A stretch of 64,000 nt of DNA from Selaginella moellendorffii. Taxonomy: Eukaryota > Plantae > Lycopodiophyta. Shown piece by piece: positions 21,205-28,637 of the stretch. A program made the translations under genes and the position numbers. Position 1 is the first letter of the stretch, and each line of letters starts with the position of its first letter. Location: positions 1,257,374-1,321,373 of the forward strand of contig NW_003314287.1 in NCBI RefSeq assembly GCF_000143415.4. Direction: 5' to 3'. Under the pieces are notes generated by a model. It ran no database searches. It was not told the DNA's origin and saw only the letters and a list, made by a program, of their open reading frames with translations.

Positions 21205-22420
21205 ATGGACAACACCACCACCGTGGACATGTCTCTGATCAATAACGGCAAGAACAGCAGTAAGTAGAGAGAAATGAGAAAGAAGCAAAATGAAGGAACA
21301 TGCTCGATCCAAATCTCTAATTACCTTTTGTTCATCCACAGCAGCTGCGGCTCCACCCGCGACCAAAATCTTTCACCACGACTCAAGATTTCGGCAATTC
21401 CTCGTCTCCAAGCCCCTCGAGGCCCTGCGATCCAAACCCCGGCTCCACTGGCTGCTCCTCTCGCTCAGCATCCTTTCGATGATGATCGGGACGGTCGTCG
21501 GGCAGCTGCTCACGCGATTCTACTTCGCGGCCGGGGGATCGCGCAAGTGGCTCTCGACGTGGCTCCAAACGTCGGGATGGCCGCTGCTGGCAGTGGCGAC
21601 TGGATCGATCTACTGGAAGCGCGGCATCAAACTCACGCCGCTCACACCGGCGCTCGCTGCAACCTACACTGCACTAGGATTTCTTGTGGCTCTATATAGT
21701 TTCATGTATGCCTATGGCCTGTCCTACCTCCCGGCCTCCACCAGCGGCCTCCTCTCCTCCAGCCAGCTCGCATTCAACGCGATCTTCGCGCTGATCATCA
21801 CGCGCCAGAAGATCAATCCCTTTGGATGGAACGCGATCGTGCTGGTGACCAGCGCCGCCGTGATCTTGGCGCTTCACTCCGATGACGAGAAGCTCCCCGG
21901 CGTGACGAGGAAGGAGGTCGTCCTGGGCTACGTGATGACAATCGTCGCCGCGGCGCTGTCTGGATTTTTCTTTCCCATCACCGAGCTTGTAATCCGGAAA
22001 TTTCTCACCGGATCTTCCAGATCAAGCGACGCCGCCACCGTCTTGTTGGAGATGCAAACCCTGCTCTCGCTCATCTCCACCGCGGTGTCCAGCGTCGCCA
22101 TGGCGATCAACCACGATTTCCTGGCGATTCCGGGCGAGTCGCGGCGCTTCAAGGCCGGCGCTGCCCGCTACTACATCACGCTCGTCTCCACCGCCGTGTC
22201 GTGGCAATTCGCATTCTTGGGAACGCTGGGGATGATCTTCCTCTCCTCGTCGCTGCTCGCGGGCGTGATTATGGCTCTCGAGATTCCTATCGGCTCCATT
22301 TTCGCGGTCATCTTCTTTGGCGATAGCTTTGGCGGCCTCAAGATCATGTCTATGTTCCTCTCGCTCTGGGGGTTTGTGTCCTACACGTATGGCGGATATA
22401 TGGACATGAAGAACAAGTAA
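21205..22420 (+). CDS. Purine permease (PUP family) copy 2; exons 21205-21259 and 21342-22420
   Basis: Highly similar to copy 1, with the same 55-bp first exon and intron position. Confidence 0.92.
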
Positions 22421-22466: not shown

Positions 22467-25400
22467 TCAAACAAAAATACACAAGCACATAAAAATTAGC
22501 GTAGTGGAAGACACGATCATGCGTGGTTGCGATGCTTTGATAAATGCAAGAGTCGGGCCTTCATAGATTCCTACACGAATCATCAAAGTAAAAGATCAAG
22601 ACAAGAAAAAGAAATCGTTTGTAACTTACTGGCGAGCATGTAAGATCCAGGCCGGGTCACAAGCGTAGTCACGTAAGTCCCCTCTTGATCTAGCTGCGCA
22701 GCCACAAGTTCCCACATTGTTGTCACGAGAATGGGCGATTCTCTGGTGTAAATAAGTTGGAGCTCATTCGTATAGTTTGGTGTTGCGTTTCCTGTCGAGA
22801 TTGCCAATGGCACTGTGGGACTACTCCTGTTAATGAATGCATTCAAGTCGTGAGCCAGAAACTATAAGAAAGCTTACTCGTTCGTCTTTCTCAGCATGAG
22901 GAAAATTGCAAAAGGCTGCTCGTCGTATGATGTTGAAGCCAGGGATGAAACGTTGGAAACTGGGACGCAGAGCCTGGCTACAATTCCCATGTCCAAAGCA
23001 TTTCCGCTAAGAGCAGCTGATGCGTAAGGACTAGAACTTAGTTCATAGTGACTTTTGCGAAGGCTCTTAGGAAATGCTATGATCGTCGCGCCGTCATATG
23101 TCGAAACTATGGTTCCACTTTGCGACAATGGAAACTTACATGTTCCTGAAAACAATGAGTCAGGAGAAAAGTATAGCAAAGCCAAAATTACCTGGAGTTC
23201 TACAAATGCGATAGCTCGAGTTCGTAGAGACATCTGAGGAAAAAGCGGAATGATAGAAAAAAGAATAGCTAATCAAGAAAATAGCTTGTGGAGGATTCGG
23301 ATCTACATTTCCGGCGGCATCAATCGAGCGCGCGTGAAAGATGTAAAGCGAGGCCGGACATAAACTGTATGTTACCAGCTGCCTGCTACACTTCCTCCAC
23401 GAATGTCTCTGGCCCTGCTACACAGACCTGAGTTCGCAACAAACTCAAAAACTGCATGATAAAATTTCACCTGTGGATCCAGTGACTGCAGCATACATTC
23501 ATATCTTTCGATACCCCCGCCATCGTATCCAGAGAGTTCAAAACTGGGACTCAAGGTGTTGACAACGCTACTACGAATCAAAGTTTCCGGCGTGCCCGTA
23601 TCTGAGAGAAAGAAAAGAAACAGTTACTATGAATCTATAATGCCTAGGATGCGCTTACCTATGTACCACTTGCAGCCACTCCACAAAGAAAACGAAGATA
23701 GGTACCTGACTTTGAAAGTGTGTGCTCCATCCACCAGAGGTCCGACGTGGTAGGGGCTTCCACAAGCCACGAATACTTGCTCATCAACTTCACACTCGGT
23801 CCAAGATAACGAGCTGTTGAAGGCCAATGTAGCTATCTGAAGGCGCGTGTAAGCCTCGGGGCACACCAGTCCATGAACTGCGCTCGAGTTCGACGTTAGA
23901 ACCAGCTTTTGCTCTGCGTGATCCAATGCTATGTTGGAAGCTCTGTCCTCGGCTTTAACCATGAACGTATGCTCCACTCCAGGTGCTAAATAAGATTGCT
24001 CCACTCTCCATGGACTCGAGCACGGTATCCAAGTGCCACCCTGCACTTGAGAGTCGAGGCGACAGTAGGATGTAGCAACACCAGATGTAGATCCAAGAGG
24101 CCCATCATCCACCGAAAACTCCGCAGTTACTACGTCGAGATCTGGCTGAGAGAGCACAAATGAGACAACCGACGGAGGCGTCGTATCCACGAGAAACCTG
24201 TGCTTGATGACGAGTCCGGTGTTTCCAGCTAAATCTGTTGCCGTCACGCTGAACTGATAGACACCGTCCTCCAGATTCCGAAACCTTGCCGGGCTTGTGC
24301 ACTGTTGCCAGCGTTCTTCTTCCGCGGTGTTTAGCTTCGTCATGCAGCAAGTCGTTGTTGACACCTCCGACGACGCAAACGCATAGCTGACATCTCTGGA
24401 CGACGAAAACAGCGGCGGTACTGCGAAGAACAGCACTTCAGGAGGCAAGCTATCGATGGTGACCGTGCAAGTGGCTGGAACGCTGCTCAGAGCACCTCCG
24501 CTTTCATTTTCCGCTGCTCGTACGCTGACTATATAGATCCCGTCGGGCAGATTACTCAGTTCCAACGGAGACGAGCACGACCTCCACCCGTAAACGGCGG
24601 CCCCTTCAATATCTGACAGGTTTAAACGGCATGACCATCTTGGTTCCTGTATACCTGGGAGATTTGGCACGTCAAGCTCGAAGTAAACACGACAAGTTGA
24701 AACGTTGGTCAAGTCCTTGGGTAGTATAGTAACTATCTTTGCTCTTGGACGTTCCCTGTGAAGTAGCCAGTGGACAAATACTGGTTGTGGATCTTGGTTG
24801 CCTGCTTTGTCAACTGCTCTGACATGAAAGGTGTACCGTCCGTCTGACCGTGCCTCGACTTTGACCGGAGACCCACAAAGCGTCCATCCATGACTCGAGA
24901 GGATTCCAGACGTGAACTGGCACTCGAAGTGGTCTGTGTCAGCTGAATCAGATGAGAACTCAAACACTGCGGTCTCGCAGAAGACGGATGCTGACGACGA
25001 TAGCAAAATTGTGCGAGGCGGTATGGTATCAATAGTAAAACTAGCGAAAGAAATCTCAGAGTAAGCAGTGTTCAAGAAGCTGCACAAAAAGCACGACTAT
25101 TATCCCGCACCAACTAAACAAGTCCACGTACCTTTCATCCCTTGCTTGAACAGAAAAAGTATAAAATGCATCTGGAAGGCCTTCAGCGAAGTAGTCATTC
25201 CCACATATTTCCCAGTCATGGCCCTTGGGAGTTTCAATGGATGCATCAAGCCTACAAAACCACTTTATGTAGGGACCAGAAGTTCCTTCCACGGTGATGC
25301 GAACATTGGCGATATTCCCGAATAACGGAGGAACTTCAACTGGATTGATAACTGCAAACATTCTAGTTAATGGTCGAGAAGCGAACATTGTTGCATATGG

Positions 25401-28400
25401 TAGGCAGGTACCTAAGCATGGTGTTGCACTCAAAGACGCGGCGCTTGCAACAAATGCAAAACGTTGTCCCAATCCGTCTGGACCTTCTTCTGGTACATAA
25501 TAACCATAAATCACTGCAACATAAAGTCCAGATTCTGGATCCGAAACAGACACCTACAACGTGAAGCGTCTTAAATCTTGCAAAGACATAAAATATTCCA
25601 ACCTGTTCAACATTGTTCATTCTGTCAGGACGTGGACCACCGTTTCCATACCGCTTGGTATTACTTGGATCAATCACGAACAAGTCCAAATCATTGACAA
25701 GGATGACACTTGCAGCCGGCAAGGCAGGCGGATCGTACCTGCAAATTACATCTGAGACGAATATAAACTGTTCCTCCAAGTCACTATACCATGCCAGCGT
25801 GAATTTCAAGTCCTCGGAGCCAGGAAAGCATGAGAAGCAATACCGTTGTCCAAATCCAGTTTTTAACGGGTTGCCTTCCTCCGCTGTAACGTTTAGTTTG
25901 TTGTGACCAGGGAGAAACAACGAGTGAAGAAGATCAATTCTTCCATAGCCTTGATTGAAGGAGAGTGGAGGATCTATGATCACTCCATTACCTGCTTAAA
26001 ACTTCAATATTAGCATACATCGTGTCTGAACAAACAAACCATTTAGTCCTCGCAGAGGCACAGCTCCATTAATAAGAATGGCTTTCACCAAGGCTCCCGA
26101 AGGTTGCCGAGAATGTGCGAGTACCTACAGTAACTGAGCTGTCAATTGAATTGCTGCAGCTTGACAGACAACCTTAGATCCTGTGGGGTAGAATCCATCC
26201 ATAAAATATTGACGGATGAGCGCTGCTCCTCCTGCTGTAATTGGTGTCGCCATCGAAGTTCCTGATAAAACTGCAGTGGAATGTCAGCGAAGACTAAACA
26301 CTAAGAACCACGACAACAACCTAAGGTCCTGCATGTGGCTTCTTTCGAGCCCATGTTGCTCCTGGCAGAGACAATCTTGTCACCTGCAAACAAGCGCGAC
26401 GTCAGCTCAAGGAAAATAGTCTCGTTTGGAAAACCTGGCGCAACAGTTTCTGGTTTTTGACGTCCGTCCAGCGTTGGACCCCACGACGAAAAACTTGTCA
26501 TGGAATCAATGCGTTCTCCATTAAAGGGAACGTGGCCCACCACTTCCACAAAGACTGAGTCACCGTGCGTGAGCATCGAGTCTAGATAATCCCCGAAAAC
26601 TCTGGGAATTGAACCGCTTGGAATGGTTATACTCTCCAGTGACGATCTTAACGACAACGGAAAGTAGCCTGTGTTTTCGTTGTTGAAAAACACGGCTGCC
26701 ACACTACCGGCGTCTTGTATGGCAACAAGCTGCAACGATAAGAAAACGTTGGCATGTACACTTAATCAAGGAAATTGTACCTTATCAATGCAGTCACAGC
26801 CTTCTCGACTTGCCAGCACCACCATTCCTGCTGCGTTGGGAGGTGAGATACATGCCTCTCCCGGTATTGCTCGTAGTAGCGGAAATGGACCCCAATTATC
26901 CTGAAACATTACTCCGAAAGAGTTCTCTAGCACCCCGACCCGCAAGTCACTGGTTCCGTTCAAAACGTAAAAACGTAAAAGAGCAAGGTTTTCATGACGT
27001 ATGGAATGCCCTGGGCCCATACTCGCGCCTACAGTTAAACTATTTTTTGACATTGCTGGAGAAGTGATAGTTCCTGCAAAACTTCAGAAGGGCCTCGAAT
27101 GAATGAAAGTAAAGAAAAAAGTCAGTCTTACCTACAGAGGAATAAGACGAGCCAGCATTGCCCGCAGCAAAAACAGGTAGGAAAGCCTGGAAAATGCAGA
27201 AACAAGGAAAAACGTGATGAATATGGGGAAAAAAGAGAATTTCAGAGATCTTACAGGATTGTTGTAGGTGAATGCATCCACACTTCGTGACATAAGGTTA
27301 TAGGAACGATCCACAGTTGTCCAAGAATCACTATGAATTCTTGCACCCAGACTGTATGCCTCCCTGTGGGTATTCATCTGAGAAATAGCAGGTTAGTAGA
27401 CATAAAACACCACACAAGCAGACATACCAGTAATAATCCGAAAGATCCATGGGTGGCGTGACATAAGTGTTCTTTCCAACGCCAATGTCCGTGAAGACAA
27501 GCTTCGCATGAGGCGCCATGCCGTTGTACTTGCTGGATTCGATAGTAAAGTCACTGAGTGTTTGATCGCACTGACCAAGAAGAGAACCAGCAACATGAGA
27601 ACCATGACCATAGCTGTCGATCAAGTCTCCACCCCACATCACTCTGTAAGACACCACCTTCCTGTGGTTTGGACCTGGCGAAGAAACTTGCTCGTCCCGA
27701 AAGTAGCAGCTGTTTGACATGACCAGTGTAAAGATCTTTTAGAAATGTATACGTACCTCAGTAAGTCGACACCACTGTCACCAACACCAACAATTTGGCC
27801 GTCACCCATGATGCCCATGCCCCAGAGTGGTCTGCTCGGAAAAAATGGAGCTCCTCTCTCCAGAGGAGCCGAGACGCCACTCTGTTGGATTGCGGATGAA
27901 AACATATTGCCAAGTCGTCCCCTGAACGCTGGAGCGATCCAAGTTACCCATTCTTGCTTCGACAGCCATTCCACATACTCTCTGGCTTGATCCAGCGGTA
28001 TTGCTGCTTGCAGTGCCGCAGGTTCTAGCTTTTTGAGCTCCACGACCTTACCATGCTCGTTTAAGCTGGAGTTCCAGTCTTGGATCAAAAGCTCCAGGAT
28101 ATCGACCTTAGCAGTGCATGGCTTACAAACAACTCCAGCAGCTGTTAGCACAGTAGCCACCACACGTCCCTGGCTATCAAAGAGGACGTCTTCTTCGAGT
28201 TTCTTCGCAAAAACTTCCTGCCACTCCGGAGCAACCTTGTATCGAGGCTTGTATTCCCCAATCCAGGAAACACCCTTGGTTCTCTTCACACGATCCACCT
28301 CCAAGTTTTTTGGAAGAAAAACGTTCCAGCTATGGTGTGGCAAGTAGTGGACGATAGCACAGCCGAGCTTCACTAGATCATCTCGGACTCCCGCATTGTC

Positions 28401-28637
28401 CCCTCGGCCGCTAAGCTTGACGATCACCTGTTTTGCAAGCTTCTCATACGCACAGCCCGACGAGCCAGTCTCGCCAAGATCGCGTGATGGAGCAAGCGCC
28501 GGCGATTTTCCAATGCGGATCTCCGAAATATTTGGCGCATTTCTGGTGTCGATCTTCATACGGCGCAGGCAGACGTGATAATGCTCGCAGCCGATCGCCA
28601 CAGCCGCTAGGGCTAGCAGCAGCAATGCCCGATGCAT
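22467..28637 (-). CDS. Multi-exon secreted subtilisin-like protease (S8, KP-43/TagC type) with PA insert, C-terminal jelly-roll, several bacterial-type Ig-like repeats and a hydrophobic GPI-like tail
   Basis: Signal peptide MHRALLLLALAAVAIG; triad GVGDSGVD / GHGSHVAGS / SGTSMATP; oxyanion FAAGN; HSDSW, SFSSWGPTLDGRQKPE, QGYGRIDL, FTLAWYDPP, VNDLDL, DRMNNVEQV; repeats C.SP....L.DG.Y.F.V.A.D.AGN....DT.PP; last exon RIYEGPTLAFIKASQPRMIVSSTTLIFMCLCIFV* (TGA at 22467-22469). Confidence 0.88.

Follow-up and report, generated by a model that had tools for sequence, protein, structure and literature searches.

A KP-43-type subtilase with a protease-associated insert and a stalk of Ig-like repeats in Selaginella moellendorffii, a probable vascular-plant member of an algal protease family

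The minus strand of a 64,000-nucleotide (nt) stretch of the genome of the lycophyte Selaginella moellendorffii (contig NW_003314287.1, positions 1,257,374 to 1,321,373; hereafter, the window, to which all coordinates refer) contains a single multi-exon gene (28637..22467), namely, RefSeq LOC9637875 / SELMODRAFT_442725, that encodes an S8 family (subtilase) protease of the KP-43 type, with a protease-associated (PA) domain inserted into the catalytic domain and a long array of immunoglobulin (Ig)-like repeats downstream of it. We consider it likely, from sequence comparison and gene structure, that this is the Selaginella member of an old, membrane-tethered, KP-43-like S8 protease family of the green lineage that was inherited vertically from streptophyte algae. 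The gene has a database entry already, its product being listed as uncharacterised, and falls into a recognised S8 subgroup; the additions here are the corrected gene model and the unusual taxonomic distribution. The model built here comprises 19 exons and 18 GT-AG introns of 46-68 nt and spans the entire gene (22467..28637), with 5205 nt, or 1735 codons, of coding sequence. It was assembled by coordinates, and the domain scans and structure predictions were run on single exons and on the public RefSeq/GenBank proteins. RefSeq isoform X4 (P0348) maps to the window letter for letter, in 17 GT-AG exons (27377..22470), with the stop codon ending at 22467. When the stretch encoding the C-terminal barrel was compared with 1.84 billion representative proteins, there was one 100% identical match, SELMODRAFT_442725 itself (P0088).

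The sequence identifies the protease as a PA-bearing S8 enzyme of the KP-43 type, distinct from the standard SBT, S1P and TPPII enzymes of plants. In P0348, Pfam detects Peptidase_S8 (PF00082, 4e-23) and, at residues 130-205, the PA domain (PF02225, 3e-07, 30.9 bits against a cut-off of 23.9), which is inserted in the catalytic domain (26586..26864, spanning the intron 26780-26730) and for which the matches in the PDB are C5a peptidase, SpyCEP and lactocepin-type enzymes. In a phmmer search of the PDB, by far the best matches are KP-43 (1wmd, 4e-38) and SubHal (5fax, 2e-38), the next one, to PA-bearing cell-envelope proteinases, reaching only 1e-11; residues 229-475 of P0348 align to residues 197-425 of 1wmd. 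Moreover, the catalytic domain is directly followed by a C-terminal beta-barrel (25479..25986, delineated by phmmer alignment to 1wmd and 5fax) that is homologous to residues ~300-434 of KP-43 and contains motifs aligning to KP-43 residues 352-404. The chains of plant SBT3, cucumisin, S1P and TPPII were not retrieved at E <= 1e-3 in the PDB search, and there was no plant SBT, S1P or TPPII among the best 120 of 1254 matches in a protein database search with P0088 as the query (one database, within a length window). Scanning of the exons and of P0348 with Pfam revealed no I9 (PF05922) or Fn3-like domain. All these results agree with an earlier note, made from the sequence alone, that described the gene as a KP-43-type enzyme distinct from ordinary plant subtilases; the protease motifs quoted in that note are all present in the translated exons, and the domain scan that it proposed returned S8, PA and Big-type (Big_13) domains.

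The beginning of the protein is missing from the public annotation. None of the six public protein models (SELMODRAFT_442725 v1, RefSeq X1-X5 and LOC9639335 of the other haplotype) begins upstream of the ATG at 27377, and all of them thus lack the predicted signal peptide, the pro-region and two catalytic residues, the Asp and the His. Upstream of this point, exon 1 (27757..28637, with an ATG at 28637) is open over its 881 nt and, together with exon 2 (27428..27709), from which it is separated by a 47-nt GT-AG intron, makes up 1163 nt without a stop codon. Exon 1 contains the codon for the catalytic Asp (27779-27777); exon 2, in which Pfam recognises a fragment of the S8 domain, contains the codon for the catalytic His (27606-27604). 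The conserved S8 core motif that follows the His and the oxyanion Asn (codon 27159-27157) are encoded in exons 3-4 (27132..27363), and the catalytic Ser codon lies at 26254..26256, so that across the exons of the 19-exon model the Asp-His-Ser triad and the oxyanion Asn come in the subtilase order. In a tblastn search, residues 42-356 of a protein from the streptophyte alga Klebsormidium nitens (P0227) match 28577-27765, within exon 1, with 28% identity, and residues 358-455 of the same protein align to exon 2 with 47% identity; the codon split between the two exons specifies Ser, and the spacing is the same as in the orthologues.

The predicted N-terminus consists of a basic residue followed by approximately 12 hydrophobic residues, with a helix at residues 2-15 in the structural model, and by inspection resembles a signal peptide. 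The AlphaFold2 (AF2) model of the pro-region, with a predicted local distance difference test score (pLDDT) of 73, consists of two beta-alpha-beta, ferredoxin-like units similar to the I9 propeptide, and a Foldseek search with the N-terminal region yielded weak matches only, to ferredoxin-like and ACT-like domains and to the Tk-subtilisin propeptide. There was no NCBIfam match for the N-terminal region and no Pfam I9 match for the pro-region.

Joining of these exons to the rest of the gene depends on intron 2 (27364..27427), which ends in two candidate AG acceptors located 14 nt apart. Splicing at the first one (27379-27378) turns the split codon into TGA, directly followed by the ATG at 27377 that is used as the RefSeq start, whereas splicing at the second one (27365-27364) yields TGG and keeps the frame straight into the conserved core motif; exons 1-2 join the rest of the gene in frame only via this second AG, for a total length divisible by three. 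Hence the intact catalytic triad reported in the earlier note needs to be qualified: the Asp, His and Ser codons are all present, but the triad would be intact only if the unannotated exons 1-2, which encode the Asp and the His, are spliced in through the downstream AG.

Downstream of the barrel, the gene encodes seven Big_13-type Ig-like repeats (23262..25351), recognised by Pfam and by a hidden Markov model (HMM) built from bacterial units. The Big_13 profile (PF19077, cut-off 27) matches P0348 with an E-value of 3e-12 and 47.4 bits, and the large exon alone with 4e-13 and 50.2 bits; the HMM, trained only on four units of the bacterial protein P0009, detects all seven units in P0348, with independent E-values from 3e-11 to 9e-03. 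Repeats 2-6 and the end of repeat 1 are carried by a single 1421-nt exon (25079-23659), so the Big_13-type array that the earlier note had placed mostly in one 1.4-kb exon is there, although with seven units instead of five or six. The AF2 model of this exon (pLDDT 86.7) is all-beta, a string of beta-sandwiches, and its Foldseek matches are tandem FN3/Ig arrays and the bacterial adhesin rods GhpA and SiiE. A possible frameshift at the end of the large exon, where an AGN-like motif is followed by TAG, was considered and rejected; that reading is in the wrong frame, and the GTAAGC donor at 23658, also used in RefSeq, keeps the open reading frame open. The core of repeat 7 (23192-23417), which fits the repeat consensus well, is treated as an intron in the older model, SELMODRAFT_442725, but is retained in the RefSeq models. 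The repeat exons and the protease belong to one gene, as the earlier note had assumed, given the five RefSeq isoforms and the collinear orthologues.

The stalk is followed by a conserved membrane-proximal domain of approximately 200 residues (22521..23261), which has no match among the Pfam families but is found also in Klebsormidium, as read directly from the alignments, which show local likeness to the C-terminal region of the algal protein. The last 17 residues of the Selaginella protein (22467..22520, including the TGA at 22469-22467) are hydrophobic, with a Kyte-Doolittle mean of 2.4, in accord with the short hydrophobic C-terminus described previously. The algal orthologues start with a signal peptide and end in a strong transmembrane helix followed by 130-170 residues of cytoplasmic tail; by contrast, the Selaginella protein stops within the hydrophobic segment, and neither a full transmembrane helix nor a cytoplasmic tail is present. 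No further 3' exons fit because a convergent permease gene ends only 47 nt away. The hydrophobic end could equally be a glycosylphosphatidylinositol (GPI) signal, a bare membrane stub or a truncated transmembrane helix. Thus, the surface-tethered protease on a stalk proposed in the earlier note is consistent with the secretory-type layout, the stalk and the hydrophobic end, and the GPI-like tail named there is one candidate reading of that end.

The tails of chlorophyte and related metagenome orthologues contain one to three motifs resembling the ubiquitin-interacting motif (UIM; acidic residues followed by L/M..A...S). Among 404 fetched proteins, this pattern has 19 matches, all in the C-terminal 60-100 residues of P0228, P0230, P0234-P0236, P0238 and P0239; the same pattern search found none in the Klebsormidium and Selaginella proteins. 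Such tails may mediate ubiquitin-linked sorting of the algal proteases.

The database search described above points to algae as the source of the closest relatives. The best non-Selaginella match is Klebsormidium nitens P0227 (2075 residues), with 553 bits and 36% identity over 84% of the query, followed by chlorophyte proteins of 1300-1780 residues from Myrmecia, Auxenochlorella, Coccomyxa, Tetraselmis and Symbiochloris; a fragment from Mesotaenium (Zygnematophyceae) is 50% identical. According to Pfam and the repeat profile, the algal relatives share the order S8, PA and 4-9 Big_13 units, and the complete collinear layout of the Klebsormidium type, that is, the pro-region, S8 with PA, the barrel, the Big_13 array and the membrane-proximal domain, is present in Selaginella. 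The best 120 of 1254 matches in this one database include no bryophyte, fern or seed-plant protein, which is not proof of loss, and a search seeded from the Klebsormidium N-terminus likewise found none from these groups. The earlier note's phrase for one of the two origins it offered, a lineage lost in seed plants, agrees with the lack of seed-plant matches but understates the pattern, given that bryophytes and ferns are missing as well.

In a 54-row tree of the catalytic region, Selaginella is the sister of Klebsormidium, with a Shimodaira-Hasegawa-like approximate likelihood ratio test (SH-aLRT) support of 91, and the prokaryotes form a separate group. In addition, four intron positions, together with their phases (APG|D, GxK|, LxW| and VEQ|V), are common to Selaginella and a Klebsormidium sp. 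contig (L002), and five positions are shared with a second algal-like contig (L001). The latter (L001:500-3020; Logan SRR24319163) is a eukaryotic contig with a GC content of 56% and introns of approximately 150-300 nt, and the homologue encoded on it has 46-58% identity with the Selaginella protein; its source is possibly another streptophyte. A cluster that had appeared as a possible plant match (P0091/P0350) was rejected as a bacterial protease in a bacterial gene neighbourhood. A further contig (L003:1428-3881; Logan ERR14790927) encodes a bacterial KP-43-like S8 protease of 817 residues, next to genes for a ThiF-like protein, a calpain-like Peptidase_C2 and a two-component system.

Several observations weigh against this interpretation of the gene and have to be set against the evidence for it. 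The first AG of intron 2, which would give a stop, has the better pyrimidine tract; the in-frame joining of exons 1-2 is not backed by any public model, all six starting at or after the ATG past that AG; the Selaginella branch in the tree is long (1.05 compared to 0.48 for Klebsormidium); the AGN motif is missing from repeat 6, and the scores of several repeats are low; and no canonical GPI omega site is visible by eye at the C-terminus, where small residues at omega and omega+2 nowhere occur together with a spacer of 5-8 residues. Those that concern the acceptor, the public models and the branch, along with the missing cytoplasmic tail and the several intron-retention and NAGNAG isoforms, would be expected if the gene is decaying or has been re-purposed, such that the first AG of intron 2 serves as the acceptor in the main mRNA, or this mRNA has its start within the intron, and translation of the long product starts from the Met at 27377; lacking the signal peptide, the pro-region, the Asp and the His, that product would be a dead cytosolic fragment or the transcript a target of nonsense-mediated decay. 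We regard this scenario as unlikely, albeit deserving serious consideration. It does not sit well with the fact that exons 1-2 remain free of stops, with the Asp and His motifs and the distance between them preserved, that the second AG restores the frame exactly over the 5205 nt, and that the Ser, the Asn and the barrel are intact, the protease part being the least variable region between the two haplotypes (0.6% allelic differences compared to 2.0% in the repeats). Furthermore, four introns of the same gene that are supported by RefSeq (introns 8, 10, 12 and 15) also skip an AG located 10-14 nt upstream of the acceptor used, intron 10 in a sequence context nearly identical to that of intron 2, so we infer that use of the second AG is plausible.

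The remaining alternatives pertain to the origin of the gene. A bacterial S8-plus-Big_13 gene could have entered the Selaginella lineage by transfer and gained its introns afterwards, the second of the two origins offered in the earlier note. Big_13 arrays and KP-43-like S8 domains are indeed common in bacteria and are combined in P0009, P0079, P0328 and P0358; other land plants are absent from the top matches; and an approximately unbiased (AU) test on the catalytic domain alone, also a point against algal inheritance, does not reject grouping of Selaginella with the prokaryotes (p 0.27). Given this result and the long Selaginella branch, the tree alone is not decisive. Nevertheless, the best bacterial proteins reach only 178 bits over approximately 22% of the query, to be compared with the Klebsormidium match over 84%; the PA insert, the pro-region and the membrane-proximal domain are shared with the algal orthologues, whereas the prokaryotic proteins in the tree lack PA; and the intron positions and phases shared with Klebsormidium, as well as the zygnematophyte fragment, speak against a recent transfer, which we consider highly improbable. 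Still less credible is contamination of the assembly with algal DNA. The nearest relatives are algal, but the gene resides on a 1.97-Mb scaffold, with a second allele (LOC9639335) on another scaffold, of 1.80 Mb, is flanked by plant genes for a PUNUT permease and an M18 aminopeptidase, and contains 18 introns of 46-68 nt, compared to 150-450 nt in the algal contigs. Thus, because of the collinearity with the algal proteins over the whole length, the shared PA, pro-region and membrane-proximal domain and the shared introns, both a recent bacterial transfer and contamination are unlikely, and algal inheritance, the ancient lineage of the earlier note, is favoured. The family itself may have come from bacteria at an earlier time, no later than the base of the green lineage.

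Under this scenario of algal inheritance, the product of 1735 residues would start with a signal peptide and so enter the secretory pathway. The pro-region of approximately 220 residues, with its two ferredoxin-like domains, probably would serve as a folding chaperone and inhibitor of the S8 catalytic domain, in which the PA insert is probably involved in substrate selection. The KP-43-type beta-barrel, a rod of seven Big_13 domains, the membrane-proximal domain and the short hydrophobic C-terminus would follow, and we infer that the protease could project some tens of nanometres outwards from the membrane, towards the cell wall, with extracellular proteins as its substrates. In the Selaginella gene, the ancestral cytoplasmic tail appears to have been lost, the protein being held, perhaps, by the hydrophobic stub or by an added GPI anchor. 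A further conjecture, which we put forward tentatively, is that Selaginella is the only one or one of very few land-plant lineages with an algal-type surface KP-43-like protease on an Ig-like stalk, in which the helix and the UIM-bearing endocytic tail were swapped for a GPI or stub anchor, and that the enzyme acts on the extracellular matrix, for example, in remodelling of the spore or gamete wall, similarly to algal hatching enzymes. If so, Selaginella would have a proteolytic system that all model plants lack.

With respect to the genomic setting, the gene lies between the plant PUNUT purine permease gene (21290-22420, plus strand, E 2e-93) and the M18 aminopeptidase gene. The single-exon permease gene is convergent with the protease gene, and the two stop codons lie only 47 nt apart, which requires 3' untranslated regions that are either very short or overlapping. 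The 64-kb window contains no further copy of the protease gene. The RefSeq isoforms X1-X5 (1303-1369 residues) differ at a NAGNAG acceptor (23414-23417; one extra Gln), at a 51-nt in-frame intron within the barrel (25789-25739), which X4 splices out and the other four isoforms (X1-X3 and X5) keep, and near 22826-22878, where an alternative junction is used.

Surveys of land-plant subtilases take SBT1-7 as the full set, and this locus would represent a vascular plant that retains a KP-43-type, PA-bearing, Ig-stalked protease of algal descent. As such, it would be a case of differential loss of an ancestral streptophyte gene and, apparently, of a change in anchoring, a bare hydrophobic end having taken the place of the transmembrane helix and the cytoplasmic tail. 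There is also a lesson for annotation: because the public models omit the signal peptide, the pro-region, the Asp and the His, automated pipelines recognise the product neither as secreted nor as a complete protease.

Among the known systems, the solved structures that are by far closest are those of KP-43 from Bacillus sp. KSM-KP43 (1WMD), classified as MEROPS S08.123 and CDD cd04842 'Peptidases_S8_Kp43_protease', and of SubHal (5FAX), both with the same S8 core followed by a C-terminal beta-barrel; KP-43, however, is a secreted bacterial enzyme of 434 residues without a PA insert, an Ig-like array or a membrane tether. The same collinear layout, from the signal peptide to the membrane-proximal domain, is found in Klebsormidium nitens P0227 ('Peptidase S8 family with Protease-associated domain') and its chlorophyte orthologues, which differ in having a true transmembrane helix and the long tail, UIM-like in chlorophytes, where the Selaginella protein ends inside the hydrophobic segment. 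To our knowledge, none of the algal orthologues has been studied experimentally. An analogy for a protease on a stalk is provided by C5a peptidase ScpA, SpyCEP and lactocepin PrtP, which likewise combine S8 and a PA insert with a beta-sandwich stalk and are surface-anchored, but have an Fn3-type stalk, an LPXTG cell-wall anchor and no KP-43 barrel, and are distant (E 1e-11). The plant subtilases, namely, SBT1-5 (tomato SBT3, cucumisin), S1P (SBT6.1/SBT7) and TPPII (SBT6.2), share the S8 fold, the PA insert (SBT1-5) and the secretory route, but the Selaginella protein differs in having a KP-43-type barrel instead of the Fn3-like C-terminal domain and in its tandem ferredoxin-like pro-region. 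Xu et al. 2019 (PMC6713707) label Klebsormidium, Chara and other algal relatives as Kp43 protease, in a 'KP43 proteinase' cluster with Klebsormidium, Chara, a Coleochaete fragment, Cyanophora, stramenopiles and bacteria; no Selaginella entry is listed in the cluster, and the non-SBT S8 clusters are stated in that paper to occur only up to bryophytes. Finally, Dictyostelium TagA/TagC and Chlamydomonas sporangin are eukaryotic S8 enzymes outside the classical groups, the Tag proteins differing in that they are fused to ABC transporters; some of the algal database matches bear 'tagA' names. According to a summary of KP-43, TagA/TagC and sporangin (Falkenberg et al. 2022, PMC9549277), TagC is reportedly homologous to the C-terminal half of KP-43, and sporangin is an algal wall-digesting S8 enzyme, which, by analogy, suggests a possible kind of role for the Selaginella protease.

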